Below the pieces are notes generated by a model, which ran no database searches, was not told the origin of the DNA, and saw only the letters and a list, made by a program, of their open reading frames with translations. A stretch of DNA of 64,000 nt from Blepharisma stoltei ATCC 30299 (taxonomy: Eukaryota; Protista; Ciliophora). A program made the position numbers and the translations under genes. Positions 1 through 33,929 of the stretch are shown piece by piece (position 1 is the first letter of the stretch; the number at the start of each line of letters is the position of its first letter). Where the stretch lies: positions 558,001 to 622,000 of the forward strand of contig CBFDEM010000024.1 of assembly GCA_965603825.1 (NCBI GenBank), read 5' to 3'.

Positions 1-3000
1 GAAACTTGAGAACGGCTGATTCCTTCAGATGGGATTTCTCCTAGTAATTTCTAAGCAGCTGGAAGATATAGTGGCGGCTCTTTTGGTCTTTTATCACAAG
101 ACTTATATTGTATTTTTGGAGGAATGTCGCTTACAGGACCTATAAACGATCTATGATGCTTTCAAACTAAAGGATTTTTATGGAACCAAATTACTACTTC
201 TGGAGATGCTCCTACACCAAGAATGAGGTTTGGATATACTTCTTTTTATGACAAAAACAATGTTTTGCAGTTTGTGGTTTTTGGAGGTGTAACTATATCA
301 GGGGTTGATAGTAATCTTTACATGTAAATTTCATATAGCCTTAACACCTCAACTTGAGTTTGATCTGCAATAGAAGTAGAAGGCGATACTCCTTTAAACT
401 CTGAAGAGCCATCACTAGTTTACTATAATAAAAAACTTTATACAGCTGGTGGAGGAAATACCTATGCAAAAATTTCACATAATGAGGCATTGCTTTATTT
501 TGATTTAGAATCAAGCGATAAGAAATGGCACAATATCACGTCTAGTAACACTTATACATATAGAATTTTCAATGGGAGCTTTTTAAAAGGTTCTGAATTA
601 TATTTGATGATGGGCTATTCAACTGATAGCAAATCTCATGAAAGCAGCTGATATAAAGTTGACTTAGAAGATCCGGACTATGACTGAAAAACAGTTTCCA
701 TTTCTGAAGATATAAATAGAAATTTAGAAATTGACAGTTACGGCTGAACTCTTATTGAGAACACCTTATATATTTTTGGAGGAGATAAAAATCCACCTTT
801 AATTAACCAATTAGCAATACTTGATATATCAGTCTCCCCAATAACTTTTTCAGTTTTTGAGAATTACTTATCACCTACCTCCAGAATGTATCATTCACTG
901 CAGCCAATTGGGCCTAATTTATATTTATTTGGTGGTTTAGGTGATAATGGGAATATTTATAACGATTTTTGAGCTTTTAATGTCATGAAAGAAGAATGAA
1001 GCCTAATAAATTCTCAAGGACAAGTTCCTTCTAAAAGGTACGGATATGCGTCAGCTGTAAACGCTGATATTATGCTTGTATGAGGTGGGTATAGCCAAGA
1101 AGGATATTTAAATGATGGTTATATATATGATATAACTTCAGAAAAATGATATGCTATATCTTACACAGGCACAGCTCCAAGCCCAAGGGTCGGCGCCTGT
1201 GCTGATTTTATAGGCTGATTTATTTATATATACGGCGGACTAACTGAAGGCGGTCTATCAGACGAACTGTGAGCTTATGATGTGACCACAGAAACATATA
1301 GCCTCATTACTAGTAAAAGTGGCCCAGGAGCTCTTTATTTTTCTACCTGCAGCGCTGATATACACAAAGTTTTATGGGTCCTATATGGTGAAAGTGATGA
1401 TGACACCCCAACTAACAAAATTTACGGCTTTGATACAGGAAAAAGTTCATGAATAAAATATAATGATGACACAAGTGATACAACTTATAGCAGAAGCAGG
1501 GCTGCCGTTTTTAAAACTACTGAACAATTTTTAATAGTAGGAGGGGAGTCCTGAGGGTTATATCCAAACACTGAGTTGTTTTATTTTACTACAGAAGCTT
1601 CTCAATTTACTTTGCTGGGAAATCTCGATGATGTATTTTTTGCTCCAGGCTATACTTATTTTCAGAATGATTTTTATATACATGGAGGAGGGACTTCAGC
1701 GACGACTCTTTTAAGGTTCAGTGTCCCTGATAATAAATTTTTAAAGCTTTCAAAGCATTTGTTTTGTCCTGAAAATAGTCCTTGCAATTTCACTTGCAGT
1801 TATGGAACTTATAAAACTGCATCAAACTGCGAAATTTGTCCACAAGGAACGTATTCAGATAAATTTAATTTATATGAGTGCAAAAAATGCCCATCAGGGA
1901 AATATGGACCTCATTATGGGGCGACAAGCTTAGATATGTGCTACCCTTGTTCAGAAAATTTTTATAATGATAAAGAAGGCCAAGAGCGCTGTATTAATTG
2001 TCCAGCAACTTCTATATGCAAAGTTGGAAGTAAAGCTTATACTAGCTATATAAGGAACTTTGAAGATTCCTCAGTCCAACCTCAAATATACTCTGCAAAC
2101 CAAGACGAAATTAATCAAAATACTTTAATTATTCAAATTGTTGTCGGAATTACAGGGCTTTTAGTAGTGATTTATATGATTATTTCCAAAAAAAGCAAAG
2201 AAATTTTACAAAGTTTCGACTTGTATATAGACAAGCATAACCATTTTATCAACGAGCCTATGTATTTAAAAAATACCAGTGTAGGTGGATTATTTGGAAT
2301 TATTTTTATTTTTTTAGCAATGATCATTATAGGGACTGAGCTCGTTAGTTTTGCATCAAATAATATTTATGAGATAAAAAGTTTGATCCCACTTGTGGTG
2401 CTTGAGCAAGATATTCCAAAAGTAATTTTTATTTTAGTTTGAGGCGGATTTTATAATATCAATTACTTTAATGAATTATGGAAGCTCATGTGTTTCTACT
2501 GGCAATGTATGTTCAGCTTATATATTTTCTAATATTGATGGTATTACTGGGAATTGGGAAGAATTGAGCTGTGAGCAAAAGGATAATGGTGACTGTATGG
2601 TTTATACCAAATGCCATAAATGCACAATTAACAAGCAAGGGCTATTGAAAATCATTATGGAGGACCCAAATGGGTACACTTCTGGGTATAGCGTAAACGT
2701 AACTTCTTCATCGTCGATTCCTAATAAATACAGTAGCTATAACCATACCATTCTTTCTGACACAAATTTTGTGTTTAGTGGAAGCGACCCTACTGTGATA
2801 TATTTTGATATTATACCATCAGTAATTTATAGCTAGTACTATAAAGATACCCAAGAAAGCGGAAACTATACAGGCTATCATGTATCTTTAGATAAGGCGT
2901 CACATAAAGGATCACAATTTGAGCCATACGTGTAAGGTTTATATAGGCTAGGACTGACGTTTATTAATTACTTGACTATAGAGTTTGATGTAGATAATAA

Positions 3001-3313
3001 TGGCCTCGCTACTACGAGATATTACAACCAGACGTGGATTATTTTACTAACGACACTGTTAAGCTCAATATTTGGAGTAAAAGGAGCTATTGGAGGACTC
3101 ATGAAATTTATTGAGAAAAAAATAATTTTACTTCACAAAAAGAAAAAACATATAGATATGCTAAAAGCTCTTGAAAAAAATTCCAAGTTTATAGAAAAAC
3201 TCAGAGAGCACTCAGATTTTAAAGTTACTAAAGACTTAGATTCCCCAAACATCAAACGAACCGAAGAGGGAGAAACAGAAAAAGAAAAATTAAGCCGAAA
3301 GGAGGCGGCTTAG
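1..3313 (+). CDS. Array copy 1 (subtype A, 5'-partial): kelch-repeat, Cys-rich, 3-TM membrane protein
   Basis: Reads open from base 1 (ETWERLIPSDG) with TGA=Trp. Introns 44-58, 324-338, 2422-2437 (16 nt), 2822-2836, 2932-2946. 3313-76=3237 nt, which is 1079 codons, ending TAG. Joins ORFs 1576, 2471 and 2972. Confidence 0.9.
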
Positions 3314-3387
3314 AGGCAAACTCTAGATTTAATCATGAACAAATATATTAATTTAAAATAGTACCAAATTCTATGTAAAATGAAATA

Positions 3388-6300
3388 ATGCACAAAAATG
3401 GGTTCCTGCTGTTTTATTTTAGCTTCGTAATAGGAGTAGAAATTGAGTTTCTTCCTTATACTAATCCTCCGCCTAGTTCCAGAGCTTTTCCTCTTATGGA
3501 AAGCTACCCAAGTTATGATATCATTCTTATTTACTCTGGGAACTCAAACCCAACTACTATATACAGTGACATCTGGCTGTTTAACACCACTCTATTACAA
3601 TGGGAAAGGCTTTTTCCCTCAAACGAAGACATCCCAGGTAAAACTTATTCAGTCGCAAGGTACAATGGAGGCTCTTTTATATCAGAAAGCAATCGTCTTT
3701 TTTATATATTTGGAGGAATATCTCTTGCAGGTCCTATAAATGACTTATGGAGTTTTCAAGCAGATGGATTTTTATGAACAAAAATAGAAACATATGGGGA
3801 TATTCCGTTGCCGAGGATGAGATTTGGGTATACTTCTTATAATGATGATTATGGAAATTTACAATTTGCTATATTTGGAGGAATAACAGGATATGGGACA
3901 GATAGTAATCTTTTTATGTAAAATTTTATTTAGACTTAACACAACTACCTGGACATGAACAGAAGTAAAAGCTAGTGGTGATCTTCCGCCTGCCATTGAA
4001 GGCCCATCTCTTGCTTACTACAAAAAAAGGCTTTATTTAGCAGGCGGATATGCCACTTATTTAAAAAACCCAAACATTCAAACATTTTTCTATTATGATT
4101 TATCCTCAAATGAATGAGTCAATATTACGTCGTCACAGTCATATGTTCCACGTTTGCATCAAGGAAATTTCATATATAATGACGAGTTTTATCTAATGGC
4201 AGGATATTCATTATCTCTAGGTTCTCTTGATATTTCATGATATAAAGTCAGCCTAATAGGCCCAAACTATAACTGAGTTAAAATTGAAATTACTTCAGAC
4301 GATGCAGATTCCATAAAACAAGACAGCTACGGCTTCGCTATTGCAGGCGATACAGTTTATCAATTTGGAGGCAACAAAACCCCAAAACCGACTAATCGAT
4401 TAGCGATTTTTAACTTAAAAAATTCACCTATATGTGCGCAAGTCATAGCTGAAAACCTTTCCCCATCCCCAAGAATGCACCATTCTTTATTGCAAGTAGG
4501 GAATTATTTATATACTTTTGGAGGGAGAGGAGATTATAATGAACTTTTAAATGACTTGTGGGAATTTGAGCCTGAAAATGATTATTGGCAGCTTAAAGTC
4601 CCTACTGGAGATGTCCCGTCTAAGCGACATAGCTATGCAGCAGCTTCAGAAGGAGATCATATGCTTATATGAGGAGGAATAGGCCAAGGAGGGTATTTAA
4701 ATGATGGGTATTTATATAATATAAACACAAACCTATGAAACTCATTAACTTATACTGGAATTAATCCTAGCCCAAGATTAGGTGCATGCATAGGGCTACA
4801 AGGCGAAAATGTTTACATATATGGCGGCTTAACAGATTCAGGACTCTCTGATGAGCTTTGACTCTATAGCATAAATTCAAAAACCTATACACTCCTCGAC
4901 CATGCCAACTCGTATGGCCCGGGGCCTATTTTTTACCCTACTTGTAGCCTTTTCTCGTCAAGTCCTGTACTTTATATAATTTATGGAGAATCCGATAATA
5001 ATATTCCTGCAAATAAAATTTATGGGTATAATATAAACACAGGGAAATGAAAATTATATTATGATGGGTCAGAAGACACCGAACATAGTAAAAGTAGAGC
5101 TGCTATATATAAAACTCCAAATATCACCATTTTTGCAGGCGGAGAGTCTCAAGGAACATATCCGAATAATGAAATCCTTATTTATTCAAGCTATTATAAA
5201 GAATGAGAATCCCTTGGATTTCTCCCTTATACAGCTATAGCTCCTGCGTCTATATATTATCAGGATTATTTTTATATATATGGAGGTGGGACTGCTGAAG
5301 ATACACTTATAAGATTTAGCATTCCTAGTAATAAATTTATTAGGTTAAGCTTAGCATCATTATGCAGCAATGGGACATGCCCATTCACGTGTAGCCCAGG
5401 GACTTATATGACTTCTAATGGCTGCAAGGTATGCACTCCAGGGTACTATTCTGATGAATTTGGATTAAATAATTGTTTAGCATGCCCTAAAGGGAAATAT
5501 AATCCTAATTATGGAGGGACTACTCTTGGCATGTGCTATCCTTGCCAAGAAGGGCAATTTAATGACAAAGAAGGCCAAGAACGCTGCTTAGATTGCCCTG
5601 GAGGTGCGACTTGCAATATTGGAAGTCTTAATTATGAGTATAAGATTACAGACTATAATGATTCATATATACAGCCGCCTATATATAAATCAAGCATTAG
5701 TGAGACAAGCCAAAACAATCTTATAACAGGAATTGTGGTCGGCACCGCAGGATTCTTAATTATTGCTTCTTTATCCATTATAAAGGAAAACAGAAAATAT
5801 TTATTATTTTTTGACTTATATATGAGCCTTCACAATTATGTTAAAAAACAAATTATGACTGTAAGGAAAACAAAAATCGGCGGGGTCTATGGGCTTGCAT
5901 TTTTATTTATTGCAATAGCGATCATTGAAATAGCGTTCGTAAATTATTTAGAAAAAAATATTTATGAAACAAAAAGCCTAGTCCCCTTTGTGGTTCTTGC
6001 CCAAGACGTAAGTAAAGTAATTTTTATGCAGTTTGAAGGCAATTTTGTGATTATCGTCACATTTATGAATTATGGAGGAAAATGTATTGATTATGATGAA
6101 GACAAAAATATAATATGCCCTTCATCAATTTCTCTTACAATTGAAGGCATTACAGGTCGTTGATCAGAACAAAGCTGCAGCCTCATGAGTAACGGCGACT
6201 GTTTAATAACAATTAGCTGTGCTAAATGCTCTATTTCTACACAAGGGAATATATATTATACAATGGATGACTCAACTGGGTACACATCTGGGTTTACTGC

Positions 6301-6883
6301 AAATATAACCTCATCTTCATCAATTCCTGGAAAATTAAGCAGCTATGAGACAACTGTGCTGCCTGATAGCAATTCTTTATTTTTTGGAGGAACGACTACT
6401 ATATATTATGATATGATATCATCAGTAATGGTAATTTAGTATTATGAAGATACCGTGAATAATAATAACGATACAGGATATCATGTAGATATTGACAAAA
6501 TTCCGAATAAAGGGCTACAATATCAATCTTTTGAGTAAAAAATATGCAGGTTGGGGTATGCTTTTATTAATTATTTAAAGCTGCAGCTTGATGTTGATGG
6601 GAATGGATTAACAACGAAGAAGTGGGCTACACAGACTTTTACTGTACTTATTTCTGCACTTCTAGGGTCTGTTTTTGCTGTTTTGGGAATAGTGGGAGGT
6701 GCAATGAGGCAGACAGAAAGCAGTAGAATTAAAATAAAGAAAATAATGGATCATACAAAGCTTGTTAAAGAAACTAAAAAAAATGCAAATAATATTTTTA
6801 CAGGTTATGGGAGGTGACAAAAGCATGGATATGATGGGAATGAATCTTCTGAAGAGTTTGATGAGTTTGAGGATAGAAAATAA
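3388..6883 (+). CDS. Array copy 2 (subtype B), 1139 aa
   Basis: Signal peptide MHKNGFLLFYFSFVIG. Introns 3638-3652, 3918-3933 (16 nt), 6017-6031, 6425-6439, 6535-6549. TGA at 6815 aligns with TGG in copies 4 and 6. TAA stop at 6881-6883. Spliced length 3420 nt. Confidence 0.9.
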
Positions 6884-7372: not shown

Positions 7373-10300
7373 ATGCTCAATCTATTTCTATTACTTACAT
7401 TAGCGTTAGGATTTACCCCTGACCGAATACCCGCAACAAATCCTCCTCCAGATGCTCGTGCACATTCTCTGATGGCCAATTTTCCAGGTCTTAATCTTAT
7501 TATGATTTTTGGAGGCTATTCAGACCCAACTAATTCAATTTATAGTGATATATGGGCTTTCGATTTATTAGCGGAAACCTGAGAAAGGCTTGTTCCTTCA
7601 GATGGAAATTCACCAGGTAACTTCTAATTAGCTGGAAGATATAGTGGAGCTGCCTTTCCAGTTATAAGTCAAGCTTTGTACTGCATTTTCGGAGGAATGT
7701 CGCTAGCTGGACCTTTAAATGATTTATGGTGTTTCCAATCTCAAGGATTTTTATGAGACCAAATTGTATCTACTGGAGACGTCCCTTCCCCTAGAATGAG
7801 ATTTGGGTCAACATCATTTTATGATGAAAATAATGTCCTGCAGTTTGCTGTAATAGGAGGAGTAACTTTGTCTGGGGTGGATAATTACCTTTATATGTAA
7901 ATTTCATATAGTCTTGACACTTCTACGTGGGTTTGGACTAAAAAAGAACCGCTAGGAGATGCTCCTTCAAATTTAGAAGGATCATCACTTGTATATTACA
8001 AAAATAAAATTTTTACTGCTGGAGGGGAAAATACTTTTGATAAAATTTCTCATATAGAAACTTTGCTTTACTTTGATTTGGATCCAAGTGATAATAAATG
8101 GCATAATGTTACTTCTAGTATAACCTATACATCAAGAATTCTTGGAGGGAGTTTTTTGAAAAATTCTGAATTATACTTAATGATGGGCTATTCAATTGAG
8201 CAAAATTCTTTTGTCAGCACGTGATATAAAGTAGACCTAGACGATCCTAAATATGATTGATCCGAAGTCTCTATTGAAGAAGACCCTGATGGGTACTTAG
8301 CAATTGATAGCTATGGTTTCACATTTTTTAACGAAGCTTTATACATTTTTGGAGGTGACCAAAGGCCTCCTGTAATAAACCGTTTGGTTAAATTTGACTT
8401 GTCAGTTTTTCCATTTAAATTTGAAGTTTATGACAGCGACTATTCACCAACCCCAAGAATGTATCATTCAATGCAGCCTGTAGGGCCTAATTTATACTTA
8501 TTTGGCGGTCTAGGTGATAATGGAGCAGCTTATAACGATTTTTGGGCTTTTAATGTTATGAAAGAAAAATGAAGCCTAATAAGTCCTGAAGGCTCAGTCC
8601 CTTCTAAAAGGTACGGATATGCCTCATCTGTAAGCGCTGATGTCATGCTTGTATGAGGCGGATATGGAAATGAAGGGTATTTAAATGATGGCTATTTATA
8701 TGATATCAGCTCAGGAAAATGGTCTGCGCTAGAATATACTGGAACAGCGCCCGCTCCAAGGGTAGGGGCATGTGCTGGGCTAAGTGGCTGGCTGATTTTT
8801 ATATACGGTGGAAAAACTGAAGCAGGGCTATCTGATGAGCTATGGACTTATGACATTACAACCCAAAAATACAATTTAATTAATAGTGGTGACAATGAAG
8901 GCCCAGGGCCGGTTTGGTTCGCAACTTGTAGAGTCTCTACATCTCAAAGCAGTTTTTTGTGGGTTCTTTATGGGGAAGCAAAAGATGACACCCCGACTAA
9001 TCAAGTTTATGGATATGACGCAGACCATAATATATGATGAGAATACAACGATGAACCATCAGACACTACTTATAGCAGAAGTCGAGCAGCAGTATGCAAG
9101 CCCTTACAAAGAATTCTTGTTGCGGGAGGCGAAACATATGGTCTCTTTCCCAACTCAGACATTTTTTACTATTCTACTGAAGATTTTGAGTTTACCATGC
9201 TTGGAAATATAACTGACTCATTTTTTGCTTCTGCTAATGCATATTTTCAAAATTATTTTTATATACATGGAGGAGGGACTTCAGCTTCTAGCCTGCTAAG
9301 ATTCAGTGTGCCTAGTAATATATTTTTAAGACTCCCTATGTGGTCGTTTTGCACTGATAATACAACTTGCAATTTTGCATGCAGCTATGGGAGCTATAGG
9401 ACTTCTTCTAACTGTGAAATTTGTCCATTGGGGACGTATTCAGATGAGTTCAATATGACTGAGTGCAAGAAATGCCCTGAAGGAAAATATGGCCCACACT
9501 ATGGAGCGACAAGTCTGGATATGTGCTATCCATGCCCTGAAGGAGAATACAATAATCAAAAAGGTCAAGGCCATTGCTTGGATTGTCCTCATACGTCAAC
9601 ATGCAGAGCAGGAAGCAAAACTTCTGATTATAATTCTTATTATTACCATGACTCATATATTCAGCCTCCAATTTATTCTGCTGATGCAGGAGAAGCAAGA
9701 AGAAATAATTTGATTATTGAGGTGGTTGTAGGGGTTGTAGGTTTAATAGTTATCATTGTGATGGTATTATTAAGAAAAGTAGAAACATTTTTATTTTATT
9801 TTGATATATATTCAGATAAACACAACCATTTTATAGGTAAGCCAATGTATTTAAAACGAACAAAACTAGGAGGGGTTTTTGGAATGGCTTTTATATTCTT
9901 AGCAATTATTATCATTGGGGTGGAAATCGTAAATTATGTCTTAAATAACGTTTACGAAACAAAAAGCCTAGTCCCGCTTGTAGTGCTCGAGCAAGATACC
10001 CCAAAAGTAATTTTTAAGCAGTTTGAAGCTGAATTTTTAATAACAATTACACTGATGAATTATGGAGGGGCATGTGTTGATGGTCCTTGCGCATCCAGTA
10101 AGATTTATTCTGATATAACTGGAATTACAGGAAACTGAACAACGTCATATTGCAAAGAAGAAGAAAATGGAGACTGTGTGATTTCTACTTTATGCATTAA
10201 ATGCTCAGTTACTAAGCAAGGGAAATTCACTATTACAATGGACGATACAAGTGGGTATACATCAGGCTATGTGGTAAATTTAACAGCTTCTTCCTCTATA

Positions 10301-10888
10301 CCACGCAAATATAGCAGCTATAAGACTTACGTTTTACCTGATGACAATTATGTATTTATAGGAAGTGACCCAACCAGGATTTATTATGACATAATCCCAT
10401 CAGTAATCGATATTTAGTATTATGAAGACACCGAAGAAACTGGCAACCATACAGGATATCATGTTTCTTTAGAAAAAGCAACCCATCAAGGATCGCGATT
10501 TAAACCATATGAGTGAATTTTATTTAGGCTTGGACTGGCATATATTAACTATTTAATTATATTTTTTGATGTCGACGGTAATGGCCTTGTAACTACTCGT
10601 TATTACAGGCAAACATGAATTCTATTATTAACAGCACTTTTGGGCTCGATATTTGGAATTTTGGGGACGATTGGAGGTCTAATGAAGTTCGCGGAAAAAA
10701 ATGTGTATGTCCTTCACAAGAGAAAAAAACATAAAAAATACTTGGAACAATTAGAAAAAAATTTTAAAATCATTAAAAAACTGAGAAAGTACCCAGATTT
10801 TAAAACTTATATAGGTGAAGAATCTCCAAGGTCGAGCCGGACAGCAAATGAAGCATCGGAAAAAGATAAATTGAACGCAGAAATATAG
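7373..10888 (+). CDS. Array copy 3 (subtype A), 1146 aa
   Basis: Signal peptide MLNLFLLLTLALG. Introns 7617-7631, 7897-7911, 10007-10021, 10403-10417, 10513-10527 (GTGA donor). Spliced length 3441 nt. Confidence 0.9.
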
Positions 10889-10997
10889 AAACGCGGTGGA
10901 TTGATTATTAGTTAAAATATTTATATAAATTTAAGCAGTTTCTTGTATTATAATAAAATGAGAAAACAAAATAAATTAACACTCAAAAATTAAATAA

Positions 10998-13900
10998 ATG
11001 AGAATTATTGGACTTCTTCTTTTTATGATAGTCTATGGAATAGATATTGAACGTATTCCAACTACGAATCCTCCTCCTAGTTCCAGAATTTTTCCAATAA
11101 TGGAAAGTTTTCCAAGTTATGATTGCATTATTGTCTATTCAGGAAATTCAAACCCTTCAACTATTTATAATGACATCTGACTTTTTAACATAACACTATT
11201 TCAATGAGAAAGGCTTTCTCCTTCAAATGACGAGGCCCCAGGTAAAGTTTATTTCAGTTCCAAGATACAACGGAGGCTCTTTTAAATCAGAAAGTAAACG
11301 TCTTTTGTACATATTCGGAGGAATGTCGCAATCAGGCCCTTTAAATGATTTATGATGCTTCCAGGCTGATGGATCTTTATGAGAAAAAGTTTTAACGAAA
11401 GGAAATATTCCACCATCTAGAATGAGATTTGGGTACGATTCTTATAATGATGAATATGGGAATTCTATTTTCGCTGTATTTGGAGGAATAACAGGCTCTG
11501 GAACGGACAATAGCCTTTATTTGTAAAATATAACTTAGACTGAATATCACTACATGGACATGAAAAGCTATGAAGCCGACTAATCTTCCTCCAAAACTTG
11601 AAGGTCCGTCATTACGATATTACGATAAAAAGTTATATTTGGCTGGCGGATATGCCACTTACTTAAAAGACCCAAACATAAAAACCACTTTTTATTACGA
11701 TTTATCCACAAATGACTGGGTAAACATAACAACTTCCAAGACTTACAGCCCAAGACTCCATCAAGGCAATTTCATTTACAAAGATGAATGATATTTAATG
11801 ACAGGCTATTCACTACCAAAGAGCTCTCTAGACACTACATGGTATAAGCTCGATTTAACTAGCTCCAGCTATGACTGAGTTGAAGTCCAAATGACAGAAG
11901 ACACTGAAAACATAACAAGGCAAGACAGTTATGGCTATGGTATTTCTGGCGATATGGCTTTCACATTTGCAGGAAATAAAATTCCAGATATTTCTAACCG
12001 ATTAGTAATTTACAACTTAAAAAATGAAATTATCACATATTATGCTCTCCCAGAAGATACCTCTCCTTCTCCTAGAATGTATCATTCTTTAGAGCCAATG
12101 GGCCGACATCTTTATACATTTGGTGGTTTAAGTGATAACGGTGAGCTTTTAAATGATTTATGATTATACGACACTATAGATGATTATTGACAAATAAAAG
12201 TACCTATTGGAGACATCCCATCTAAAAGGCACAGTTATGCTTCAGCCTCTGATGGAGACCATATGCTTATATGAGGGGGAAATGGTCAGGAAGGATACTT
12301 AAATGATGGGTATTTTTATAATATAAATACAAATACATATGTGGCGCTTACGTATAAAGGAAAGAATCCAAGCCCAAGAGTAGGAGCTTGTATAGTGATG
12401 CATGAAGAAAATATTTATTTATATGGTGGCTTGACAAATGCAGGGCTATCTGATGAGTTTTGGTATTATAGCATTAACACTCAGACCTATAAACTTTTAG
12501 ACTCTGGAAATTCAAATGGCCCTGGGCCATTAATTTACCCTAGATGCAGCCTTTCTACTACTGTATCCAATTTAATATATGTTTTGTATGGAGAAAGCGA
12601 AGACCTTTACCCCACAAACGAAATTTATGGCTTCAATGCAAAATCCTTAAAATGGAAACAATTTTACAGCATCGATACAAGCATCTACGCAAAGAGTAGA
12701 GCTGCTGTATTAAAGCTCCCAAATATAGTTATAGCTGCTGGTGGAGAATCAGAAGCCACTTACCCAACTAATGGAATTTATGCATACAATATTAAGTCTG
12801 ACCAATGGACATTTTTTGGAGTTCTTCCATATTCGACTTTCGGTCCAGCATCCACATATTTTAAAAACTATTTTTATATTCACGGCGGAGGTACTGCTGA
12901 GTACACATTATTAAGATTTAGTGTGCCAAGCAATAAATTTATCAAAATTGATTTAAAATCATTATGTACAACAGCAGATGATTGTGATTTTACTTGTAGC
13001 CCAGGGACATTTAATAGTTCTTCAAGCTGCGAAGTCTGTGAAGCAGGGACATATAGTGGTGAATTTGGGAAAAGTAGCTGCACACCTTGTACAAAAGGGA
13101 AATATGGCCCTCATGATGGGACTACAACTGGAGATATGTGCTATCCTTGCCAACAAGGGCAGTTTAATGACAAAGAAGGCAAGTCTTATTGTAATGATTG
13201 CCCAGGAGGAGCTACTTGCAATATTGGTAGCCTAACTTATAATTATAATATTACAGACTATAATGATACATTTGTCCAGCCAGCAATATATAAAACAAAT
13301 CAAGAAACAGTAGCAAAAAACAACTTAATCACAGGGGTGGTCGTGGGAGCTCTAGGGTGTTTAGTTATTTTATCATTAATAATTGTAAGAAGGAACAGAA
13401 AACACCTACTTTCTTGTGATTTGTATTCTGAAATGCATAACCACTTTGAAAGAGAGCTTATGTATATAAAAAGAAGAAAAATAGGTGGAGTTTTTGGAAT
13501 TATGTTTATTTTTATAGCAATAGCCATTATAGAAATTTCATTTGTGAATTATTTGAAAAAAAATGTTTTTGAAACTAAAAGTTTGGTACCACTTGTCGTG
13601 CTGAAGCAAGATGTTTCAAAAGTAAGTTTTAGGTAGTTTGAAGGGAATTTTTATATTACAATTACACTTATGAATTATGGAGGTACTTGTGTTAACTATA
13701 ATTCTTTAAATGAGATGACATGTCCTTCATCAATTTCTCATACAATTGACGGGATTAATGGGAACTGAGAAGAGCAGGATTGCGAGCTTCTGGATAATGG
13801 AGATTGCGTAATAACAATAAATTGTGTTAAATGCTCTATTAATACACAAGGGAACATATTTTATACAATGGACGACTCAAATGGGTATACCTCAGGATTT

Positions 13901-18361: not shown

Positions 18362-18531
18362 AATGATTTTATTAAAAGAAAATTATCTTTAAAATATTTT
18401 TACTTTGAAAAAACAAATAAAATAAGACCGAAATTTCTATACATAAAATTGCAAAATCGAGTTTATAATGATTTCTAGTCATTTTGAGAGTTTATCTATA
18501 CGTAGAAATAATAATATTTAAATTTGAAATA

Positions 18532-21500: not shown

Positions 21501-22027
21501 CTGAAAATAATTACGTGTTCATCGGTGGAACCACGACAATATATTATGATATGATCCCATCAGTAACCAATATTTAGTACTACGAAGATACAATATATAA
21601 TAAAGATGATACCGGATACCACGTTGAAGTTAAAAATATTCCAGACAAAGGCTTGCAATATCAATCTATTGAGTAAAATTTATATAGACTGGGAAATGCA
21701 TTTATTAATTATTTAACCTTGGAGCTTGATCTTGATGGAAATGGGCTTGTTACAAGTAAAGGGGCTAAGCAAACTTTTATAAACCTTATTTCTGCACTTT
21801 TAGGATCTGTTATAGCTGTTTTAAAGATTTTAGGAACTGCAATGGGGACGACTGAGGACAGCTGGCACCAGATAAAGAAAACTTCAGTGCATCGGAAATT
21901 GGTAAAAGAAACAAAAAGAAATGCAGAAAATATCCATAGTTCTTATGGAAAATGGCAAAAGAACGGCTATGATGATGCTATGTCTTCTGAAGGAATGGAA
22001 GAGCTAGATTTTAATTATGAAAAATAA
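18532..22027 (+). CDS. Array copy 6 (subtype B), 1139 aa
   Basis: Signal peptide MYIKAFLIFCFSVIYG. Introns 18782-18796, 19062-19077 (16 nt), 21155-21169, 21563-21577, 21673-21687. Spliced length 3420 nt. Confidence 0.9.
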
Positions 22028-22529: not shown

Positions 22530-25500
22530 ATGGTTTCCTCAGTACTTTTATACTATCTACTTCTCAGGGTTCATAGCTTGCTAATCGAAAGAATTCCATC
22601 CACAGGCACTCCTCCAGAGGCAAGAGCTTTATGTATTATGGAAACCTTTGAAGATCTTAACGTTACATTAGTTTTTGGAGGATACTCAGATCCCAGAAAT
22701 GCTTTTAATGACCTATGGAGTTTTGATTTACAAAGAAATATATGAAGCAGACTTTCAGCTTCAGATGGAATTTATCCAGGTAAAGCCTAATTTAGTTTCT
22801 AGATATAATGGTGGATCATTTATTTCATCAAAAGATTTTTATTTATATATATTCGGAGGGATGTCTGTATCAGGACCATTAAATGATTTATGAAGGTTCC
22901 AAGTGGACGGATTTTTGTGAACACAAATAGTTACATCGGGAGGCATCCCATCTCCAAGGCTAAAGTTTGGATATTGCTCATTTACTCAAAATAATATTTT
23001 AAAATTCGCTGTTTTTGGAGGCTTGACTATGAAAGGAGATGATAATAATCTTTTTTTGTAAAATTCATATAGACTTGATACTTCAACTTGAACATGAGAA
23101 AAACTGCAACAAAATGGGGATATTCCGCCTGCAATTGAAGGAGCAAGCCTGGTTTATTATAATAATTGCTTATTTATAGCAGGAGGTGAAGCATCGAATA
23201 CTACAAATATGTATTTGCAGACATTTTATTTATATGATTTAAGCAATAATAAATGAAAAAATATAACTTCATCGAATACTTATTCACCAAGGATTTTCTA
23301 TGGAAGTTTACTATATAATGAAGAACTGTATTTATTGCACGGCTATTCTAATTTACTTAAGAAAAATAACCCAGATTGATACAAAGTTAATTTATTAGAC
23401 AGTAATTATGAGTGAAGCCAAGTTCAATTAGATGATAATACAAATGGAGTATTATCAGTAAATAGTTATGGCTCTACTTTATATAATTCGAAAATCCTTG
23501 TATTTGGTGGAAATCAAAATCCCCCAATAGTAAATCAATTAGTTATTTTTGACTTAGAGTTTTCTCCAATCAAATATCAAGTTTATGATAGGTATAAGTC
23601 TCCAAGTCCAAGAATGTATCATTCAATGCAAGCAATGAACCACAATTTATATTTATTTGGTGGGTTGGGTGCTAATGAAGAGCTTTATAACGATTTATGG
23701 ACTTTTAATTGCATTGATGATACTTGAAATAACATTGATGCAACTGGAGACATTCCTTCCAAACGATACGGATATGCATCAGCTGCAAATGCAGGATTAA
23801 TGGTTGTATGAGGAGGCTATGGAGCTAATGGGTATTTAAATGATGGCTATATCCTTGACATTACTGCAAATTCATGGCATAGTATGGATTATTTTGGTGA
23901 TGCTCCAAGTCCAAGAGTAGGTGCATGCGGTGCACAAATGGGATCAAAAATAGCCATATATGGAGGATTAACTGAATCAGGACTTTCTGATGAACTCTGG
24001 GTCTATGATTTTACTACATCTCAATATACTCTTCTTGACTATAACAATACTAAAGGTCCTGGGAAATTATATTATGCTACTTGTAGGATGTCTACATCAA
24101 CACCTAACTTTGTGTATGTGTTATATGGAGAAGGCGAAGATGAAGTCCCTCTTAATGGAGTTTTCACTTTTAATATGTCAAGCAAAATTTGGATTGCAAA
24201 TTATACAGATAAAGTTGATCTTACTTGAGCTAGAGCTAAAAGCTCAGTTTATAAGCTAAAAACAAGGATTTTGGTCATAGGAGGAGAATCATTTGGAAGT
24301 TATCCTAATAGTGAAATTTTTTATTTAGATACCTCAAAAAATACACATGTGCAAATCGGATCTTTAGACTCTGCCATATTTGCTGCAGCTTTTGCATACT
24401 TTCAAAATTATGTTTATATACATGGAGGAGGTACAGCAGTTGGCTCCTTATTAAGATTTAATGTCCCTTCTAATAAATTCATTAGAGTTCATCTATGATC
24501 TGACTGTGCTGACAATACCACTTGTTTTTGGGCTTGCAGCCCAGGGACTTATAGAACTAATAATTGTTTTGTATGCCCACCTGGGACTTATTCAGATGGA
24601 TTTAATCACACATTTTGCGATAAATGCCTAGAAGGCAAATATAACGCTGAATATGGCGCCACATCTAAAGATTTATGCTACCCATGCCAAGAAGGCACTT
24701 ATAATGATCAAAAAGGGACTGCACGTTGTCTATGGTGTCCATATGGCTCAAATTGTGATGTAGGAAGTGTAGACTATAACTACCAGCTCCTTGTCTATGA
24801 CGATAAATCAATTCAACCAGCAATTTATATCTCAGATACGAACCAAATCGACGAAACAACTTTTATTATCCAAAGTACCGTTGGTTTTGCAGGATTGCTC
24901 GTCATTATTTTATTTATTTTTGTTAAAAAAGGCAGAGAATTTTTAGAAGACGCAGATTTGTATACAAATGGCCATAATCATTTAGCAGGCCAAGCGATGT
25001 ATTTAAAGAAGACTAAAATAGGTGGGCTTTTTAGTATTATTTTCATATTTATAGCTATTATAGCAGTTGGTACAGCTCTGGTGAATTATTCATTAAATAA
25101 TGTATACGAAGTTAAAAGCTTGGTGCCGTTGGTAGTACTCAAGCAGGATGTCCCTGAGGTAAATTTTATATAGTTTATTGGAGATTTCATAATAACAGTT
25201 ACTTTGATACATTATGGAGGTACTTGCACATCGAAAAACGATTGCTCATCAGAATTGTCTCATATAATTACAGGAATTAATGGCTCTTTCAGCAAATCTT
25301 CATGTAGGTCTTATGATAATGGAAACTGTGACATCACTATTTTATGCAAGAGCTGTGAAGTATTAAGCTACGCACAAATTTCATACTCCATGAATAATCA
25401 AAATGGCTACGTTTCAGGTTTTACTGTAAATGTAACCTTTTCCTCATCAATCCCCAATGAAAAAAGCAGCTACGAAATGACCCTTGAGCCATCTGAAAAT

Positions 25501-26019
25501 CATGTGTTTTCTGGGAACACCCCATCTGAGGTTTATTTTTATACAATTCCTTCAGTAAATTTTATTTAGCTTTATTCAGAAACTTGAACTAAAAAAAATC
25601 AGACAGGATATCATGTTTCATTAAAACAGCCCTCTGATAAAGGCTCAGAGTATCAGGCATTTGAGTAAAACTTATATAGGCTTGCCTTAGCATTTAACTC
25701 GTATTTAAATATAAAATTCGATATCGGAACAAATGGACTTGTGACTACTAGAAATGTTAGCCAAACATTTATCATTTTAATAACTACGCTTTTAGGGTCT
25801 GTTTTTGGGATTATGGGGAGTATTGGAGGGATAATGAAGCTTGTTGAAGAAAAGTGGATTAATATTGAAAAGAAATTAAAAGAAAAATCATCTTATGAAA
25901 AATCACTAGAAAACGTTGAAATGATTTCGGGCACATATGAGCGCTCCAATGGCTTGGGTTTAAATGAGCCTGATTTTTCTGAAAAACTCGTAATATCTGA
26001 CAAAATTTTTATGATATAG
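22530..26019 (+). CDS. Array copy 7 (subtype C), 1137 aa
   Basis: Signal peptide MVSSVLLYYLLLRVHS. Introns 22780-22795 (16 nt), 23058-23072, 25159-25173, 25555-25569, 25665-25679. Spliced length 3414 nt. Confidence 0.9.
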
Positions 26020-26623: not shown

Positions 26624-29600
26624 ATGGCTTTCCTTTCATTTCTGTTCTGCTTTCTATTTCAAGTCAATAGCTTGCTAATAGAAAGAATCCCTTCCACGAG
26701 TACACCTCCAGTAGCGAGATCTTTATGTGCTATGGAAGCTTTTCCAGATCTTAACGTAACTATAGTGTTTGGAGGCTACACAGATCCTAGAAATGCGGTT
26801 AGTGATTTATGAAGTTTTGACTTGGAAAGAAAAATTTGAAGTCGACTTGCAGCTTCAAATGATATTTACCCTAGTAACTTTAATTTAGCAGCACGATATA
26901 ATGGAGCTTCTTTTACAAGTTCAAGTGACTTGTATTTTTATATATTTGGTGGAATGTCAGTATCTGGCCCTTTAAATGACTTATGAAGATTTCAAGTTGA
27001 AGGCTTTTTATGAACCCAAATCATCACATCAGGGGATATTCCTACTCCTCGGCTCAAATTTGGCTATTCTGCCTTCACCCAAGACGATAATATTTTAAAA
27101 TTCGCAGTGTTCGGAGGTTTGACAATGAAAGGTGACGACAATAATCTTTATTTGTAAAATATATTCAGACTTGACACTTCGACTTGAAAATGAAAAAAAC
27201 TGCCTAAAAGTGGTGATATTCCGCCCGCAATTGAAGGAGCAACGCTAGACTATTATAACGGCTGTTTATTTATATCAGGCGGTGAGTCCAGAGGAGCAGC
27301 AAATCCATCAATACAAACTTTTTATTTATATAATTTGACTAGCCAAAAATGGACAAATATAACGTTAGCTTCTACATATACTTCAAGGACGTTACATGGG
27401 AGCGCATTAATTAATGATGAACTCTATTTAATGAACGGCTATTCAAGTGTAACTAAAAAAAACGTGCCTGAATGATATAAAGTAAGCTTATCTGACCCTA
27501 GTTATAATTGAAGCAAAGTTCAGTTTGATACCAATACGAGCAGCTTATTGTCATGGGACAGTTATGGGTATGCATATTTTAAATCAAATATCTTTATTTT
27601 TGCAGGTGATTTAAATCCGCCTATAGTTAACAGTTTTGTCATTTTTGATTTGCAATCCTCTATCATTAAATATGATGCTTATGACAGTTATCATTCTCCT
27701 AGTCCAAGAATGTACCATTCAATGCAAGCAATGAGCAATAATTTATATTTGTTTGGAGGGTTAGGAGTTGATGAAGAGCTTTATAATGATTTATGGACTT
27801 TTAATTGTGTTGATGAGACGTGAAAAGCTATTGACACAACTGGGAATATACCTTCTAAACGATATGGATATGCATCGGCAGCGAATGCAGATTTAATGCT
27901 TGTGTGAGGAGGATATGGTGTAAATGGGTATTTAAATGATGGGTACTTACTTGATATTACGTCAAATGCATGACATACTCTAACCTATTCTGGAGATGTC
28001 CCAAGTCCAAGAGTAGGAGCATGCGGCGCTCAGATGGGATCAAAAATCGTTATATATGGTGGATTAACAGAATCAGGACTTTCTGATGAGCTATGGGTTT
28101 ATGATTTGTCAACTTATCAATACACACTTTTAGACTATAGCAATACTAAAGGGCCTGGAAAATTATATTATGCTACTTGCAGAATGTCTACATCAACTCC
28201 GAATTTTGTATATGTACTGTATGGAGAAACTGAAGATGAAAAGCCACTGAATGGAGTTTTTACTTTTAACATGTCAAGTAAAGCCTGAATCGCTAATTAT
28301 ACAGATACAGTAGATCTTACATGGGCAAGAGCCAAAAGCTCAGTTTATAAGCTAAAAACAAGAATTTTGATCATAGGAGGAGAATCTTTCGGAAGTGAGC
28401 CAAATAATGAAATTTTTTATTTAGACACAAATAGTAATAAGCATGTACAGATCGGGAAATTAGAAAGTTCTATCTATGCAGCAGCTTTTGCTTATTTTCA
28501 AAATTACGTATATATACATGGTGGAGGAACTGCAGTTGGCTCTGTATTGAGATTTAACGTGCCTTCTAATAAATTCATAAGAATCCACTTATGATCTGAT
28601 TGCACTGACAATACAACATGTTTTTGGGCATGCAGCCCAGGGACTTATAGAAGTGATAACTGCATTATATGCCCGCCTGGGACTTATTCTGATGGCTTTA
28701 ATCATACTTTTTGTGATAAATGCCCTCAAGGGAAATATAATGGCCATCATGGAGCAACTTCTAAAGACTTATGCTATCCCTGCCAAGAAGGTACTTATAA
28801 TAAGCTAAAAGGAGCTGCAGCCTGCTTAAAATGCCCATATGGATCTAAATGTGATGTAGGCAGTGTTGACTTTAGTTTCGTTTCCAAAACTTATGACGAT
28901 AAATCAGATCAGCCAGCACTTTATACACCAGACACTGACCGGGTAAAAAATGATACGTTTATTATTCAAAGCCTTGTTGGGTTTATAGGACTATGTGTTA
29001 TTCTTCTATTAATTTTTGTAAAAAAAGGAAGGGAACTGCTTGAAGACGTTGACTTGTACACAAATTTTCATAATCATATTATAGGAAGAGTGATGTATTT
29101 GAAGCAGACTTGGCTTGGAGGAGTTTTCAGTATCATTTTCATATTTCTTGCAATTATGGCTGTCGGTACAGCTTTAGTTAATTACGCTTTGAATAACACA
29201 TATGAAGTAAAAAGCTTAGTACCACTAGTCGTCCTTGAGCAAGACGTGTCTAACGTAAATTCTACATAGTATATTGGTGATTTCACAATAATCGTTACAT
29301 TAATCCACTATGGAGGAACTTGCATGGCAACTAACGAATGCTCATCTGAGCTCACACAAACTATTACTGGGATTAATGGCTCTTTAACTAAATCTACATG
29401 TCAAGCATATGATAATGGGAATTGCGAAATTACGATTAAATGCAAAAACTGTGAAATATTGAGTTATGCCCAAATTTCATATGCCATGAATAACCAAAAC
29501 GGCTATGTTTCAGGTTTCACTGTAAATGTCACAGCTTCTTCATCTATTCCTAATGAAAAAAGCAGCTATGAGACAACTATTGAGCCATCTAAAAATTTTG

Positions 29601-30112
29601 TGTTTATGGGAACAGTTCCATCAGTGGTTTATTTTTATGCTATTCCTTCAGTAATTTTTATTTAGTATTATTCTGAAACACAAACTGATAAAAATCAGAC
29701 AGGATATCATATATCCTTGAAACAAGCATCAGAAAAAGGATCAGAGTATCAAGCATTTGAGTAAAATTTATATAGACTTGGTATAGCGTTTAATTCATAC
29801 TTAAATATCAAATTTGACACAGGAACAAATGGGCTTGTGACAACGAGAAATGTCCGCCAAACGTGGATTATTTTAATTACTACACTTTTAGGGTCTGTTT
29901 TTGGAATTATGGGAAGTATTGGTGGGATAATGAAGCTAGTGGAGAAAAGATGGACAAAAATCAAAAAAATGTTAAAGAAAAAGTCTGCATACTTGAAGGC
30001 TGAGGAAAATGCTGACATTATCACAAGTTCATATGAAATCCCACACTTTTATGAAGAACCATCTTCATCGCCCAAGGAAAGTCAGCCAGCATTTAAATTG
30101 TTTATTATATAA
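26624..30112 (+). CDS. Array copy 8 (subtype C), 1137 aa
   Basis: Signal peptide MAFLSFLFCFLFQVNS. Introns 26874-26888, 27154-27168, 29255-29269, 29651-29665, 29761-29775. Spliced length 3414 nt. Confidence 0.9.
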
Positions 30113-30436: not shown

Positions 30437-33400
30437 ATGGTCTTTTATGCATTACTATGGTACTTTCTACTTAAAGTCAACAGCTTGACGATGGAAAGAA
30501 TTCCTTCCACAAGTACTCCTCCAGAAGCAAGATCTTTATGTGTCATGGAAACTTTTCCAGACCTTAACGTAACTATTGTTTTTGGTGGCTACTCAGATCC
30601 CAGGAATGCTTTTAATGACCTATGAAGCTTCGACTTGCAAAGAAAAGCCTGAAGCCAGCTTGCTGCTTCCAATGATATTTACCCTAGTAACTTTTATTTA
30701 GCTTCTCGCTATAACGGAGGCTCATTCACAAGTTGAAGTGAGCAGTACTTCTATATTTTTGGTGGAATGTCTGTATCTGGCCCATTAAATGACTTGTGAA
30801 GATTCCAAGTAGATGGGTTTTTATGAACCCAAATAATCACATATGGGGATATTCCTTCTCCTCGTCTAAAATTTGGATATACAGCTTTCACTCAAGATGA
30901 TATTTTAAAATTCGCAGTATTCGGAGGGTTGACTATGAAAGGAGATGACAATGGTCTTTATTTGTAAAATATAATTTAGGCTTGATACATCAACTTGAAA
31001 ATGGAGAAAACTCCCTCAAAATGGTAGTTATCCGCCTGCAATTGAAGGAGCGACGCTTGATTATTATGAAGGATACTTTTTTTTGGCAGGCGGTGAAACT
31101 AGAGAAGCTGCAAACCCATCAATACAAACTTTTTATTTATATGATCTGAATAATGAAAAATGGAAAAATATAACATCAGCGCATACGTATTCTCCAAGGA
31201 CGCTTTGTGGAAGTGCTTTAATTAACGATGAGTTATATCTACTGAATGGTTATTCAAGTGTAACTAAGAAAAATGTACCTGAATGATATAAAGTCAGTTT
31301 ATCAGACCCTAATTATGAATGAAGCCAAGTTCAATTCGACACTGCTACAAATAACTTATTAACTTTAGATAGTTATGGGTATGCGTATTTCAAGTCAATT
31401 CTCCTTATTTTTGCAGGCGATCGAAATCCACCTATAACAAACCAATTAATGATTTTTGATTTGGGGACATCTCCCATCAAATCCGATGCCTATGACAGCT
31501 ACAATTCTCCAAGTCCAAGAATGTACCATTCAATGCAAGCAATGAATAATAATTTATATTTGTTTGGTGGGCTGGGCTCTAATCAAGAGCTTTATAATGA
31601 TTTATGGACTTTTGACTGTGTTGATGAAACTTGAAAAACGATTGATGCAATTGGAAATATCCCTCCCAAACGCTATGGCTATGCATCAGCGGCTAGTGCA
31701 GATTTAATGCTCGTGTGGGGAGGATATGGAGTAAACGGGTATTTAAATGATGGGTACTTACTTGATATTACGTCAAATGCATGGCATACCATGACATATT
31801 CAGGAGATGTTCCAAGTCCAAGAGTAGGTGCATGTGGTGCCCAGATGGGATCAAAAATCGTTATATATGGTGGATTAACAGAATCAGGGCTTTCTGATGA
31901 GCTATGGGTCTATGATTTGACGACTTATCAGTATACACTTTTAGATTATAACAATACGAAAGGGCCTGGAAAATTATATTATGCTACTTGCAGAATGTCT
32001 ACATCAACTCCGAATTTTGTATATGTGCTGTATGGAGAAACTGAAGATGAAAAGCCACTGAATGGAGTTTTTACTTTTAATATGTCAAGTAAAGCCTGAA
32101 TCGCTAATTATACAGATACAGTAGATCTTACATGGGCAAGGGCCAAAAGCTCAGTTTATAAGCTAAAAACTAGAATTCTAGTTATAGGAGGAGAATCGTT
32201 TGGAAATGAGCCAAAAAACGAAATTTTTTACTTAGACACAAACAATAACGAGCATTCTCAAATTGGAAAACTAGAAAGTTCTATTTATGCAGCAGCTTTT
32301 GCATATTTTCAAAACTATGTGTATATACATGGTGGAGGAACAGCAGTTGGCTCAATATTAAGGTTTAATGTGCCTTCTAATAAATTCATAAGAATTCACT
32401 TATGATCCGATTGCACTGACAATACAACTTGCTTTTGGGCCTGCAGTCCAGGGACTTATAGAAGTGATAACTGCATTATATGTCCTCCCGGGACTTATTC
32501 TGATGGATTTAACCATACTTTTTGTGATAAATGCCCTCAAGGGAAGTATAATGGCCATTATGGCGGAACATCAAAAGACTTATGCTACCCATGCCAAGAA
32601 GGCACTTATAGCAGTCAAAAAGGAGCTGCTGCTTGTTTGGACTGTCCATATGGATCAATTTGTGACGTGGGGAGTGTAAATTACACCTATCAATTAAAAA
32701 CCTACGACGATAAATCAATACAGCCAGCTCTTTACTCTCCAAATACAGACCAAATACATAATGATACCCTAATTATTCAAAGCACAGTTGGTTTTTCAGG
32801 CTTGATCGTTATTTTAGTATTAATTTTTGTAAAAAAAGGGCAAAGCTTGCTAGAAAGTATTGACTTGTACACAACGAATCATAATCATTTAGTCGGACAA
32901 GTTATGTATTTAAAGCAGACTTGGCTTGGAGGAGCTTTTAGCATAATTTTTATATTTCTCGCAATTATAGCAGTTGGGACAGCTTTGGTAAATTATTCTC
33001 TGAATAATGTATATGAGTCTAAAAGTTTAGTTCCATTAGTAGTGCTTGAGCAAGATGTTTCAAATGTGAGGTATATATAGTTTATTGGAGACTTTACAAT
33101 AGCAGTTACCTTAATTCATTACGGAGGGACTTGTGTGTCAGCTAATGCTTGTTCATCTGAGCTCTCCCAAACTATTACTGGGATTAATGGAATTTTCAGT
33201 AAATCTGTATGTAAAGCTTATGACAATGGAGATTGTGACATCTCTTTTAGGTGCAAAAATTGTGAAGTGTTAAGCTACGCACAAATTTCATATGCCATGA
33301 ATAACCAAAACGGTTATGTCTCAGGTTTTTCTGTCAATGTAACAGCTTCTTCTTCAATTCCTAATGAAAAAAGCAGCTACAAGACAACTATTGAGCCATC

Positions 33401-33929
33401 TAAAAATTTTGTGTTTATGGGAACAGTCCCATCTGTAGTTTATTTTTATACAATTCCTTCGGTAGCATTTATTTAGTATTACTCAGAACCCCAAACTGAT
33501 AAAAATCAGACAGGATATCATATGTCCTTAAAGCAAGCATCAGAAAAAGGATCAGAGTATCAAGCATTTGAGTAAAATTTACGCAGGCTTGGTTTAGCAT
33601 TTAATTCATACTTAAATATTAAGTTTGACATCGGAACGAATGGACTTGTGACAACGAGAAATGTCCGCCAAACATGGATTATTTTAATTACTACACTTTT
33701 AGGGTCTGTTTTTGGAATTATGGGAAGTATTGGAGGGATAATGAAGCTAGCTGAGAAGAGATGGACTGAAATTAAAAATAAAGTGAACAATAAAGCAGCT
33801 TTAATAAAAGCTGAAGAAAACTCAAATGCCATATCTAGCTCATATGAAAGTCCATACAGCTTTGAAGATATTTCACCTTTGCCATCAACTCCTGAAAAAT
33901 CTCCATCAATGAAGTATTTGATAATTTAA
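30437..33929 (+). CDS. Array copy 9 (subtype C), 1138 aa
   Basis: Signal peptide MVFYALLWYFLLKVNS. Introns 30687-30701, 30964-30979 (16 nt), 33066-33080 (GTGAG donor), 33462-33476, 33572-33586. Spliced length 3417 nt. Confidence 0.9.

Follow-up and report, generated by a model that had tools for sequence, protein, structure and literature searches.

What kind of protein is encoded by the tandem array that opens a 64,000-nucleotide stretch of the macronuclear genome of Blepharisma stoltei (the window), and does each repeat of the array hold a single gene? On the plus strand of window positions 1-33929, when only TAA and TAG are counted as stops, nine head-to-tail units of about 3.5 kb are found, named g1 to g9. 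The nine proteins belong to a heterotrich-ciliate family of three-pass membrane glycoproteins, each of which fuses two units. The first unit is a type-I-like ectodomain made of a leader, two six-bladed kelch propellers, two Cys repeats and an anchor helix, the first transmembrane helix (TM1). The second is a core with two transmembrane (TM) helices. It begins with a cytosolic motif and TM2, continues with a disulphide-bonded beta-sandwich of about 210 amino acids (aa) that faces the outside or the lumen, and closes with TM3, which is rich in Gly, and a tail that is basic and helical. The division into two units is drawn from conservation, scored in bits over an alignment of 53 modules from relatives (A2): TM1 is unconserved (mean 1.28 bits, with no consensus residue), while TM2 (2.04 bits, gathered on one helix face, p=0.015) and TM3 (2.25 bits) are conserved.

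The gene models were obtained from a MAFFT DNA alignment, in which GT..AG elements of 15 or 16 nt share five columns in all nine units. This gives 45 introns, of which 38 measure 15 nt and the other 7 measure 16 nt; GTAA opens 42 of them, and every one ends in TAG or CAG. The spliced coding sequences are divisible by three and have no internal TAA or TAG, and the eight complete copies (g2 to g9) encode 1137-1147 aa. Copy g1 starts to the left of the window, which therefore shows only 1078 aa of it; in the public record it has 1145 aa. In-frame TGA occurs at 9-18 codons per gene, the residues facing TGA in other paralogues are 85% Trp, and TGA and TGG swap at 14 conserved Trp columns. Both 15/16-bp introns and UGA read as Trp are published traits of B. 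stoltei (PMC9942806). A preliminary description of this DNA had proposed nine genes, each with five tiny introns and a frame of about 1140 aa once TGA is read as Trp, and the models bear this out. The count of nine is exact, since a RING-finger gene and two small genes precede g1 in the public B. stoltei sequence CAJZBQ010000024.1; the one correction is that g1 is incomplete in the window. Searches of the window were made exon by exon and between TGA codons, and the joined translations were used for alignment, hydropathy and the ratio of nonsynonymous to synonymous substitution (dN/dS). Full-length analyses were run on the public proteins P0002 and P0162, which are equal to g2 and g4.

The g2 model is 100% identical over its full length to P0002 (CAG9320199.1, 1139 aa), and the g4 model likewise to P0162 (1140 aa). 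Both are called single genes by the RNA-seq-guided public annotation. This bears on the suspicion of an artefact, namely that the two halves are separate genes, or that the copies are decaying pseudogenes, chance frames or repeats, which is almost certainly wrong. It can appeal to the public annotation of g3, g5, g6 and g8, which splits short N-terminal fragments off these genes, so that the models match (99.8-100%) annotated proteins that are shorter at the N-terminus. However, the splits fall in the kelch region and not between ectodomain and module, and removal of introns 1 and 2 restores full-length frames in all four genes, as in g2 and g4. All nine frames are open. For six paralogue pairs, dN/dS (Nei-Gojobori) was computed separately for kelch region, Cys repeats, TM1-TM2, TM2-TM3 domain and tail, and lies at 0.06-0.35 in each of them, with dS from 0.7 to saturated. 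Such values at such divergence indicate old and constrained genes and contradict pseudogene decay; the nine genes are intact, old and selectively maintained paralogues. Stentor, with its standard genetic code, shows the same architecture, as do a Climacostomum transcriptome and environmental contigs.

The array comprises three subfamilies, A (g1, g3, g5), B (g2, g4, g6) and C (g7, g8, g9), with protein identities of 62-83% within and 42-49% between them. The gene order A-B-A-B-A-B-C-C-C implies that a unit of one A and one B gene was duplicated repeatedly and that a C triplet followed. The adjacency of A and B genes raises the question of hetero-oligomers between neighbouring A and B products.

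To describe the protein, g2 (subfamily B, 1139 aa) is used as the reference; it occupies 3388..6883, with exons 3388-3637, 3653-3917, 3934-6016, 6032-6424, 6440-6534 and 6550-6883, and it and all features below are on the plus strand. By hydropathy, all nine copies have an N-terminal hydrophobic leader and strong hydrophobic segments near residues 768-787, 822-841 and 1057-1075, i.e., a leader plus three TM helices. In g2 the signal-peptide-like leader covers aa 1-17 (3388..3438; hydropathy and alignment). The kelch region (aa ~25-640, 3460..5338) spans introns 1 and 2 and holds twelve GG-type blades at a spacing of about 50 aa, which are read as two six-bladed propellers from the Pfam matches and the blade spacing. 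In P0002, Kelch_KLHDC2_KLHL20_DRC7 (1e-77) and Beta-prop_ATRN-LZTR1 (6e-59) are matched above cut-off, and kelch matches are also found in exon pieces of g3, g4 and g9. The Cys-rich stalk (aa 649-732, 5363..5614) carries CxxCxxG(T/K)Y repeats of the Ephrin_rec_like/TNFR-like type; Ephrin_rec_like (PF07699) scores 33-50 bits against a cut-off of 23.1 in window pieces and P0002, with two repeats.

The C-terminal module is numbered here by position in P0002:740-1139. TM1, a poorly conserved tether helix (aa 760-787, 5696..5779), corresponds to helix 21-48 of the AlphaFold (AF2) model. It is followed by a cytosolic loop (aa 788-818, 5780..5872) with a D-x-Y...H-N...K-T-x-x-G-G motif, and by TM2, the first helix of the conserved two-TM core (aa 819-846, 5873..5956; hydropathy and AF2 model). 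The elongated beta-sandwich ectodomain (aa 847-1057, 5957..6634) spans introns 3-5 and is modelled with a predicted local distance difference test (pLDDT) of 93.8 and a predicted template-modelling score (pTM) of 0.88. Conserved features of the TM2-TM3 domain are six Cys, among them a CxxC, and sequons. TM3 (aa 1058-1084, 6635..6715) is Gly-rich, reads L-L-G-S-V-F-G...G-x-x-M followed by an invariant Glu, and is the best-conserved segment of the module. The basic cytosolic tail (aa 1085-1139, with the stop codon 6716..6883) has a conservation of 0.97 bits, and its first ~35 residues extend the TM3 helix in the AF2 model. Across the family, the tail is variable at 55-75 aa, and neither a conserved di-lysine nor another C-terminal sorting motif was found by alignment and conservation. 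Among the 53 relatives, D60 and H66 in the loop, G82, G329 and E346 are invariant, and G83 is nearly so. Every element of the layout that had been claimed, from leader through about twelve kelch repeats, Cys repeats, TM1, a ~30-aa loop, TM2 and a ~210-aa domain to TM3 and basic tail, is thus present.

The AlphaFold model of the whole module, built from A2, has a pLDDT of 90.7 and a pTM of 0.79. In it, TM1 is followed by a short helix, TM2 and a beta-sandwich of about 208 residues, and TM3 runs on into a long helix. When this model was compared with the PDB by Foldseek, the best 20 matches were all PAC/TMEM206/ASOR (E 3e-9 to 2e-6, probability 1.0, target TM-score (TMt) 0.28-0.45), followed by P2X7 (6e-6; P2X TM-scores 0.09-0.17). 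Erv41p (3zlc) was matched by the module and beta-sandwich models with E 1.1e-5 to 2.4e-5, probability 1.0 and TMt 0.36-0.43, the module alone giving 1.1e-5 and TMt 0.40-0.43, and ASIC1a was matched by the module at E 3e-4 with a query TM-score (TMq) of 0.30. For the beta-sandwich alone (A3), the only matches of probability 1.0 were PAC (E 1e-7, TMq 0.30-0.41, the top 14) and Erv41p (1.4e-5). PAC and Erv41p were the only families to combine high probability with a TM-score above 0.25. No TM-score reaches 0.5, so that the likeness lies in topology and local geometry and not in rigid superposition. In these predicted structures, the TM2-to-TM3 core has the Erv41/ERGIC-PAC topology and fold.

No Pfam domain scores above threshold from TM1 to the C-terminus. 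In a lenient Pfam scan, ERGIC_N (PF13850) is matched sub-threshold in 31 of the 53 modules, the next most recurrent family in 8, and the ERGIC_N matches are always in register, the D-x-Y...K-T-x-x-G-G loop, TM2 and first strand falling on profile positions 1-64. As controls for the chance recurrence of a family, the TM3 region and the beta-sandwich by itself were scanned too, and neither gave a recurrent family. The TMEM206 profile is outside the 25 most recurrent of the 71 Pfam families for the whole module, and the full lists of families matched by the TM3 region and by the beta-sandwich do not include it. The ASC profile is matched once in 53 at chance level (E 0.011), with no other ASC or P2X signal in Pfam. 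Over TM1-loop-TM2, DUF3169 (5/53, best 4e-5) and DUF4064 (8/53) were taken as matches of hydrophobic composition. PDB sequence-profile searches with A2 and A3 gave no PAC chain at E up to 10, and chance-level matches only (TMEM9, E 0.7; an exosome protein, 0.7-1.1). The chance-level TMEM9 match (9dnx, a V-ATPase assembly regulator) pairs a TM helix and a juxtamembrane D-A-Y...H-N with module residues 24-83 (g2 ~5705-5884), which include the same conserved D-x-Y...H-N motif. The description of the module as ERGIC/ENaC-like is supported structurally, by the Foldseek matches to PAC and Erv41p, with the recurrent but sub-threshold ERGIC_N matches in addition.

PAC is an animal, chiefly vertebrate, family, and ERGIC_N is the only recurrent sequence signal of the module. 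From these two facts we infer that the core descends from the pan-eukaryotic ERGIC/Erv lineage, and not from the animal PAC family. The core is probably oligomeric, because Erv41-Erv46 is an obligate hetero-oligomer, probably 1:2 (PMC7001479), and PAC is a homotrimer (PMC11059273).

The end of TM3 (g2 ~6695-6718) reads G339-x-x-M342-x-x-x-E346, with M nearly invariant and E invariant. In pufferfish PAC, G313 and M316 line the pore and K320 is the selectivity residue, and the K319E change in human PAC gives cation selectivity (PMC11059273). The G-x-x-M-x-x-x-E of the module is spaced like G313/M316/K320, a correspondence of spacing only, which serves as a lead toward a receptor-channel. On such an account, the core would be a PAC/ASIC-like trimeric pore lined by TM3 and gated by kelch ligands or by pH acting on the beta-sandwich, and would owe a selectivity for cations to the invariant Glu where TM3 meets the cytosol. 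This is possible but doubtful. PAC occupies the top of both Foldseek comparisons, with ASIC1a and P2X also matched; TM3 is the segment that is conserved most and the tail is not conserved; and Pfam found no cytosolic enzymatic or adaptor domain that could carry a signal. In the other direction, the TMEM206, ASC and P2X profiles give single chance-level matches at most, the sole recurrent sequence signal is that of ERGIC proteins, the TM-scores are below 0.5, and the residue correspondence with PAC is one of spacing. We know of no ion conduction by ERGIC proteins.

The ERGIC_N signal and the Erv41p fold match raise another alternative, a cargo receptor of the early secretory pathway or of granules, which would resemble Erv41-Erv46/ERGIC2-3, cycle between compartments and use its kelch propellers as a lectin-like cargo head. 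It could, for example, sort extrusome or pigment-granule glycoproteins and release them in a pH- or redox-dependent manner. The conserved CxxC of the beta-sandwich recalls the CXXC of the Cys-rich region of Erv46 that is needed for cargo retrieval, and the ..MI and ..II ends of subfamily C resemble the hydrophobic, COPII-binding C-terminus of Erv41 (PMC7001479). A hybrid of the Erv type also has a precedent in PDI-C (PMC4729789). Nevertheless, a conserved di-lysine or hydrophobic C-terminal signal is missing family-wide, COPIIcoated_ERV was not detected, and housekeeping cargo receptors are usually few, not hundreds of diverged tandem paralogues. This account is distinctly unlikely.

The size of the family was estimated by searching 1.84 billion representative proteins with a profile (A1) of that part of the TM2-TM3 domain which exon 4 encodes. 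The search returned 312 clusters (50% identity) at E<=1e-3 and 184 at E<=1e-10. Full-length relatives retain the TM1/TM2/TM3 spacing and fall into two size classes, one near 1140 aa with two propellers and the other near 950 aa with a single propeller. Kelch, Ephrin_rec_like and module occur together in 20/20 relatives examined, by which a promiscuous or mobile module was ruled out. The preliminary idea that a separate two-TM class had been attached to the ectodomain is correct as regards the fold of TM2-TM3, which matches PAC and Erv41p; it does not hold for this array, where the module was not newly bolted on, the whole architecture being shared by these relatives. All members with a named source are from B. 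stoltei (at least 8 contigs), Stentor coeruleus or Climacostomum virens, and their names are automatic. A heterotrich origin would also fit two environmental loci, of which one has TGA as Trp and the other the standard code. Further tandem arrays are present on a second B. stoltei contig (CAG9314114-CAG9314118) and on an ENA metagenome scaffold (1-10649); the scaffold relative has TGA as Trp and 28% GC. Word-seeded searches with P0002 740-1139, A2 and A3 returned 7, 1 and 1 family members, respectively, and are uninformative on breadth. The literature searched holds nothing on this family or its Stentor gene identifiers and no TMEM206-Erv41 link, and no characterised protein with this architecture was found in the databases and literature searched. 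The family is old and large, and its members were already in public databases as unnamed predictions.

The reading that is tentatively preferred makes each protein part of an oligomeric receptor or adhesin that binds ligands, with the core as the scaffold for assembly and trafficking. The core would oligomerise, probably as a trimer like characterised members of its fold, and would carry the protein from the endoplasmic reticulum (ER) to the surface or to a late compartment, with TM1 as a passive tether. Prey, bacteria, or glycans of a partner cell or matrix may be among the ligands that the propellers bind outside the cell or in the lumen, and the output would be adhesion, uptake or sorting, not ion flow. 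The diverged paralogues, including the A/B gene pairs, could supply different ligand specificities and perhaps hetero-oligomers. An ER-resident cycler is disfavoured because the tail is variable and has no conserved di-lysine or C-terminal motif, and a housekeeping ER-Golgi role is argued against by the sheer size of the family. The 312 clusters and recurring tandem arrays suggest the genomics of surface receptors.

Several observations weigh against the scaffold reading and the proposed ERGIC/Erv descent of the core. The fold matches have TM-scores of only 0.30-0.45, a topological likeness, and Foldseek places PAC above Erv41p. All ERGIC_N matches are under the Pfam cut-off, the best having an E of 0.0016 and 17.2 bits against 27, and COPIIcoated_ERV (PF07970) was not detected, the one relative of 53 that matched (E 0.13) being at chance level. 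The highest conservation lies in TM3 and in the charged, membrane-proximal D60, H66 and E346. Such conservation exceeds the needs of a scaffold, and a pore or gating role fits it at least as well. A bolder proposal would see in these proteins trimeric channels of a new class, gated by ligands and probably conducting cations, with an ERGIC/Erv-derived PAC/ASIC-like pore joined to a double kelch sensor by the extra helix. This proposal is rather improbable.

The remaining genes of the array follow the same six-exon plan. In subfamily A, g1 (1..3313) is cut 5' by the window edge and has exons 1-43, 59-323, 339-2421, 2438-2821, 2837-2931 and 2947-3313. The 1146-aa g3 (7373..10888) has exons 7373-7616, 7632-7896, 7912-10006, 10022-10402, 10418-10512 and 10528-10888, and its residues 260-1146 equal P0164. 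The 1147-aa g5 (14843..18361) has exons 14843-15086, 15102-15366, 15382-17470, 17486-17869, 17885-17979 and 17995-18361, and its residues 137-1147 equal P0165. In subfamily B, g4 (10998..14497) has exons 10998-11241, 11258-11522, 11539-13621, 13637-14029, 14045-14139 and 14155-14497, and g6 (18532..22027, 1139 aa) has exons 18532-18781, 18797-19061, 19078-21154, 21170-21562, 21578-21672 and 21688-22027, with 99.8% identity to P0163. In subfamily C, g7 (22530..26019, 1137 aa) has exons 22530-22779, 22796-23057, 23073-25158, 25174-25554, 25570-25664 and 25680-26019. Its neighbour g8 (26624..30112, 1137 aa; residues 260-1137 equal P0001) has exons 26624-26873, 26889-27153, 27169-29254, 29270-29650, 29666-29760 and 29776-30112. 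The last copy, g9 (30437..33929, 1138 aa), has exons 30437-30686, 30702-30963, 30980-33065, 33081-33461, 33477-33571 and 33587-33929. The annotated proteins of g3, g5, g6 and g8 have 887, 1011, 981 and 878 aa, respectively, with small separate fragments of the 'galactose oxidase' type upstream.

Another version of the locus is available in CAJZBQ010000024.1, where 756992-781716 corresponds to window 1-15234 with 13 extra blocks of 71-1314 bp within and between g1-g5. The blocks are placed at window positions 55, 311, 816, 2510, 4021, 4418, 5764, 10216, 10911, 13289, 13644, 14605 and 15097, and their edges are mostly short TA-containing repeats. One of them, the 1314-bp block at 2510, ends in inverted repeats and is transposon-like in appearance. 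This stretch looks like a germline-type version of the locus, macronuclear sequence plus internal eliminated sequences (MAC+IES), so that the array genes would be interrupted by eliminated sequences. Two blocks, those at 55 and 15097, are nested at homologous places in the 15-nt intron 1 of g1 (44-58) and of g5 (15087-15101), and the third subfamily-A copy, g3, has no extra block in its intron 1; an eliminated sequence inside a tiny intron is odd.

Beyond the array, window positions 34000-64000 hold unrelated ordinary genes on both strands. These include genes for a Brix-domain protein, UDP-glucose dehydrogenase, an IQCH-like ATP-grasp protein, a cation-efflux transporter, a Vps41-like tetratricopeptide-repeat (TPR) protein, an ATP-binding-cassette (ABC) transporter and a leucine-rich-repeat (LRR) protein. 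No tRNA gene was found in this part.

The family is a large and uncharacterised group of membrane proteins in Blepharisma, Stentor and Climacostomum, whose conserved C-terminal half is invisible to Pfam. Through one query it links the ERGIC/Erv41-46 cargo receptors with PAC/ASIC-type two-TM channels, and a common origin of these becomes testable. An ion-conducting core would make these proteins the first receptor-channels to use kelch propellers as sensors, and candidates for the sensing of prey, mates or contact in giant ciliates. Should the trimeric-channel proposal be true, heterotrichs would possess hundreds of chemosensory or contact-sensing receptor-channels, and ERGIC-type cargo receptors and PAC-type channels would be one superfamily. 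If the core does not conduct, a housekeeping sorting module would have been recruited as a scaffold for surface receptors. Stentor and Blepharisma are both established experimental organisms.

Among known systems, Erv41/46-ERGIC, PAC/TMEM206 and, as a parallel for the fusion, PDI-C come closest. By sequence the family does not qualify as PAC/TMEM206, and its likeness to Erv41/46-ERGIC stays at the sub-threshold ERGIC_N signal; it also has an extra helix and an ectodomain. With Erv41/Erv46-ERGIC1/2/3 it shares the succession of cytosolic motif, TM helix, large luminal twisted beta-sandwich with disulphides, TM helix and cytosolic C-terminus, together with the Erv41p fold match and the in-register, sub-threshold ERGIC_N; the oligomeric working form known there is probable here. 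The Blepharisma proteins differ in the extra N-terminal TM helix bearing a kelch/Cys-repeat ectodomain of about 750 aa. The Erv proteins have two TM helices and short cytosolic ends with COPII/COPI signals, whereas three TM helices and a long variable tail are found here. The Blepharisma-type family has moreover expanded to hundreds of paralogues in tandem arrays, and in the heterotrich family ERGIC_N stays below cut-off and COPIIcoated_ERV is undetected.

PAC/TMEM206/ASOR, a proton-activated chloride channel whose homotrimer has its pore lined by TM2, is the best structural match, with cytosolic ends and a beta-sandwich of about 210 aa between two TM helices, and its second helix has G-x-x-M-x-x-x-charged at equal spacing. 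However, PAC has a Lys where a Glu stands here at comparable spacing, no sequence similarity was detected, and PAC, at about 350 aa, has neither the added ectodomain nor a third TM helix. ENaC/ASIC and P2X, which are trimeric ligand-gated channels, share the general plan of two TM helices and a large Cys-containing ectodomain, but their ectodomains are larger and differently built, and the P2X TM-scores are low. A parallel in construction is PDI-C, a hybrid of protein disulphide isomerase and Erv41/46-like cargo receptor in plants and several protist groups, in which an Erv41/46-type two-TM module was fused to another luminal domain by exon shuffling. There, a thioredoxin domain was added, two TM helices are predicted against three here, and the protein is reported absent from alveolates (PMC4729789).

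In its ectodomain the family resembles attractin and MEGF8, which likewise place an extracellular kelch propeller of the Beta-prop_ATRN-LZTR1 type beside Cys-rich repeats. Both cross the membrane once and combine the propeller with CUB, C-type lectin, PSI and laminin-EGF domains. Pfam showed no such domain in P0002, and the Blepharisma family carries instead two further TM helices and a beta-sandwich.

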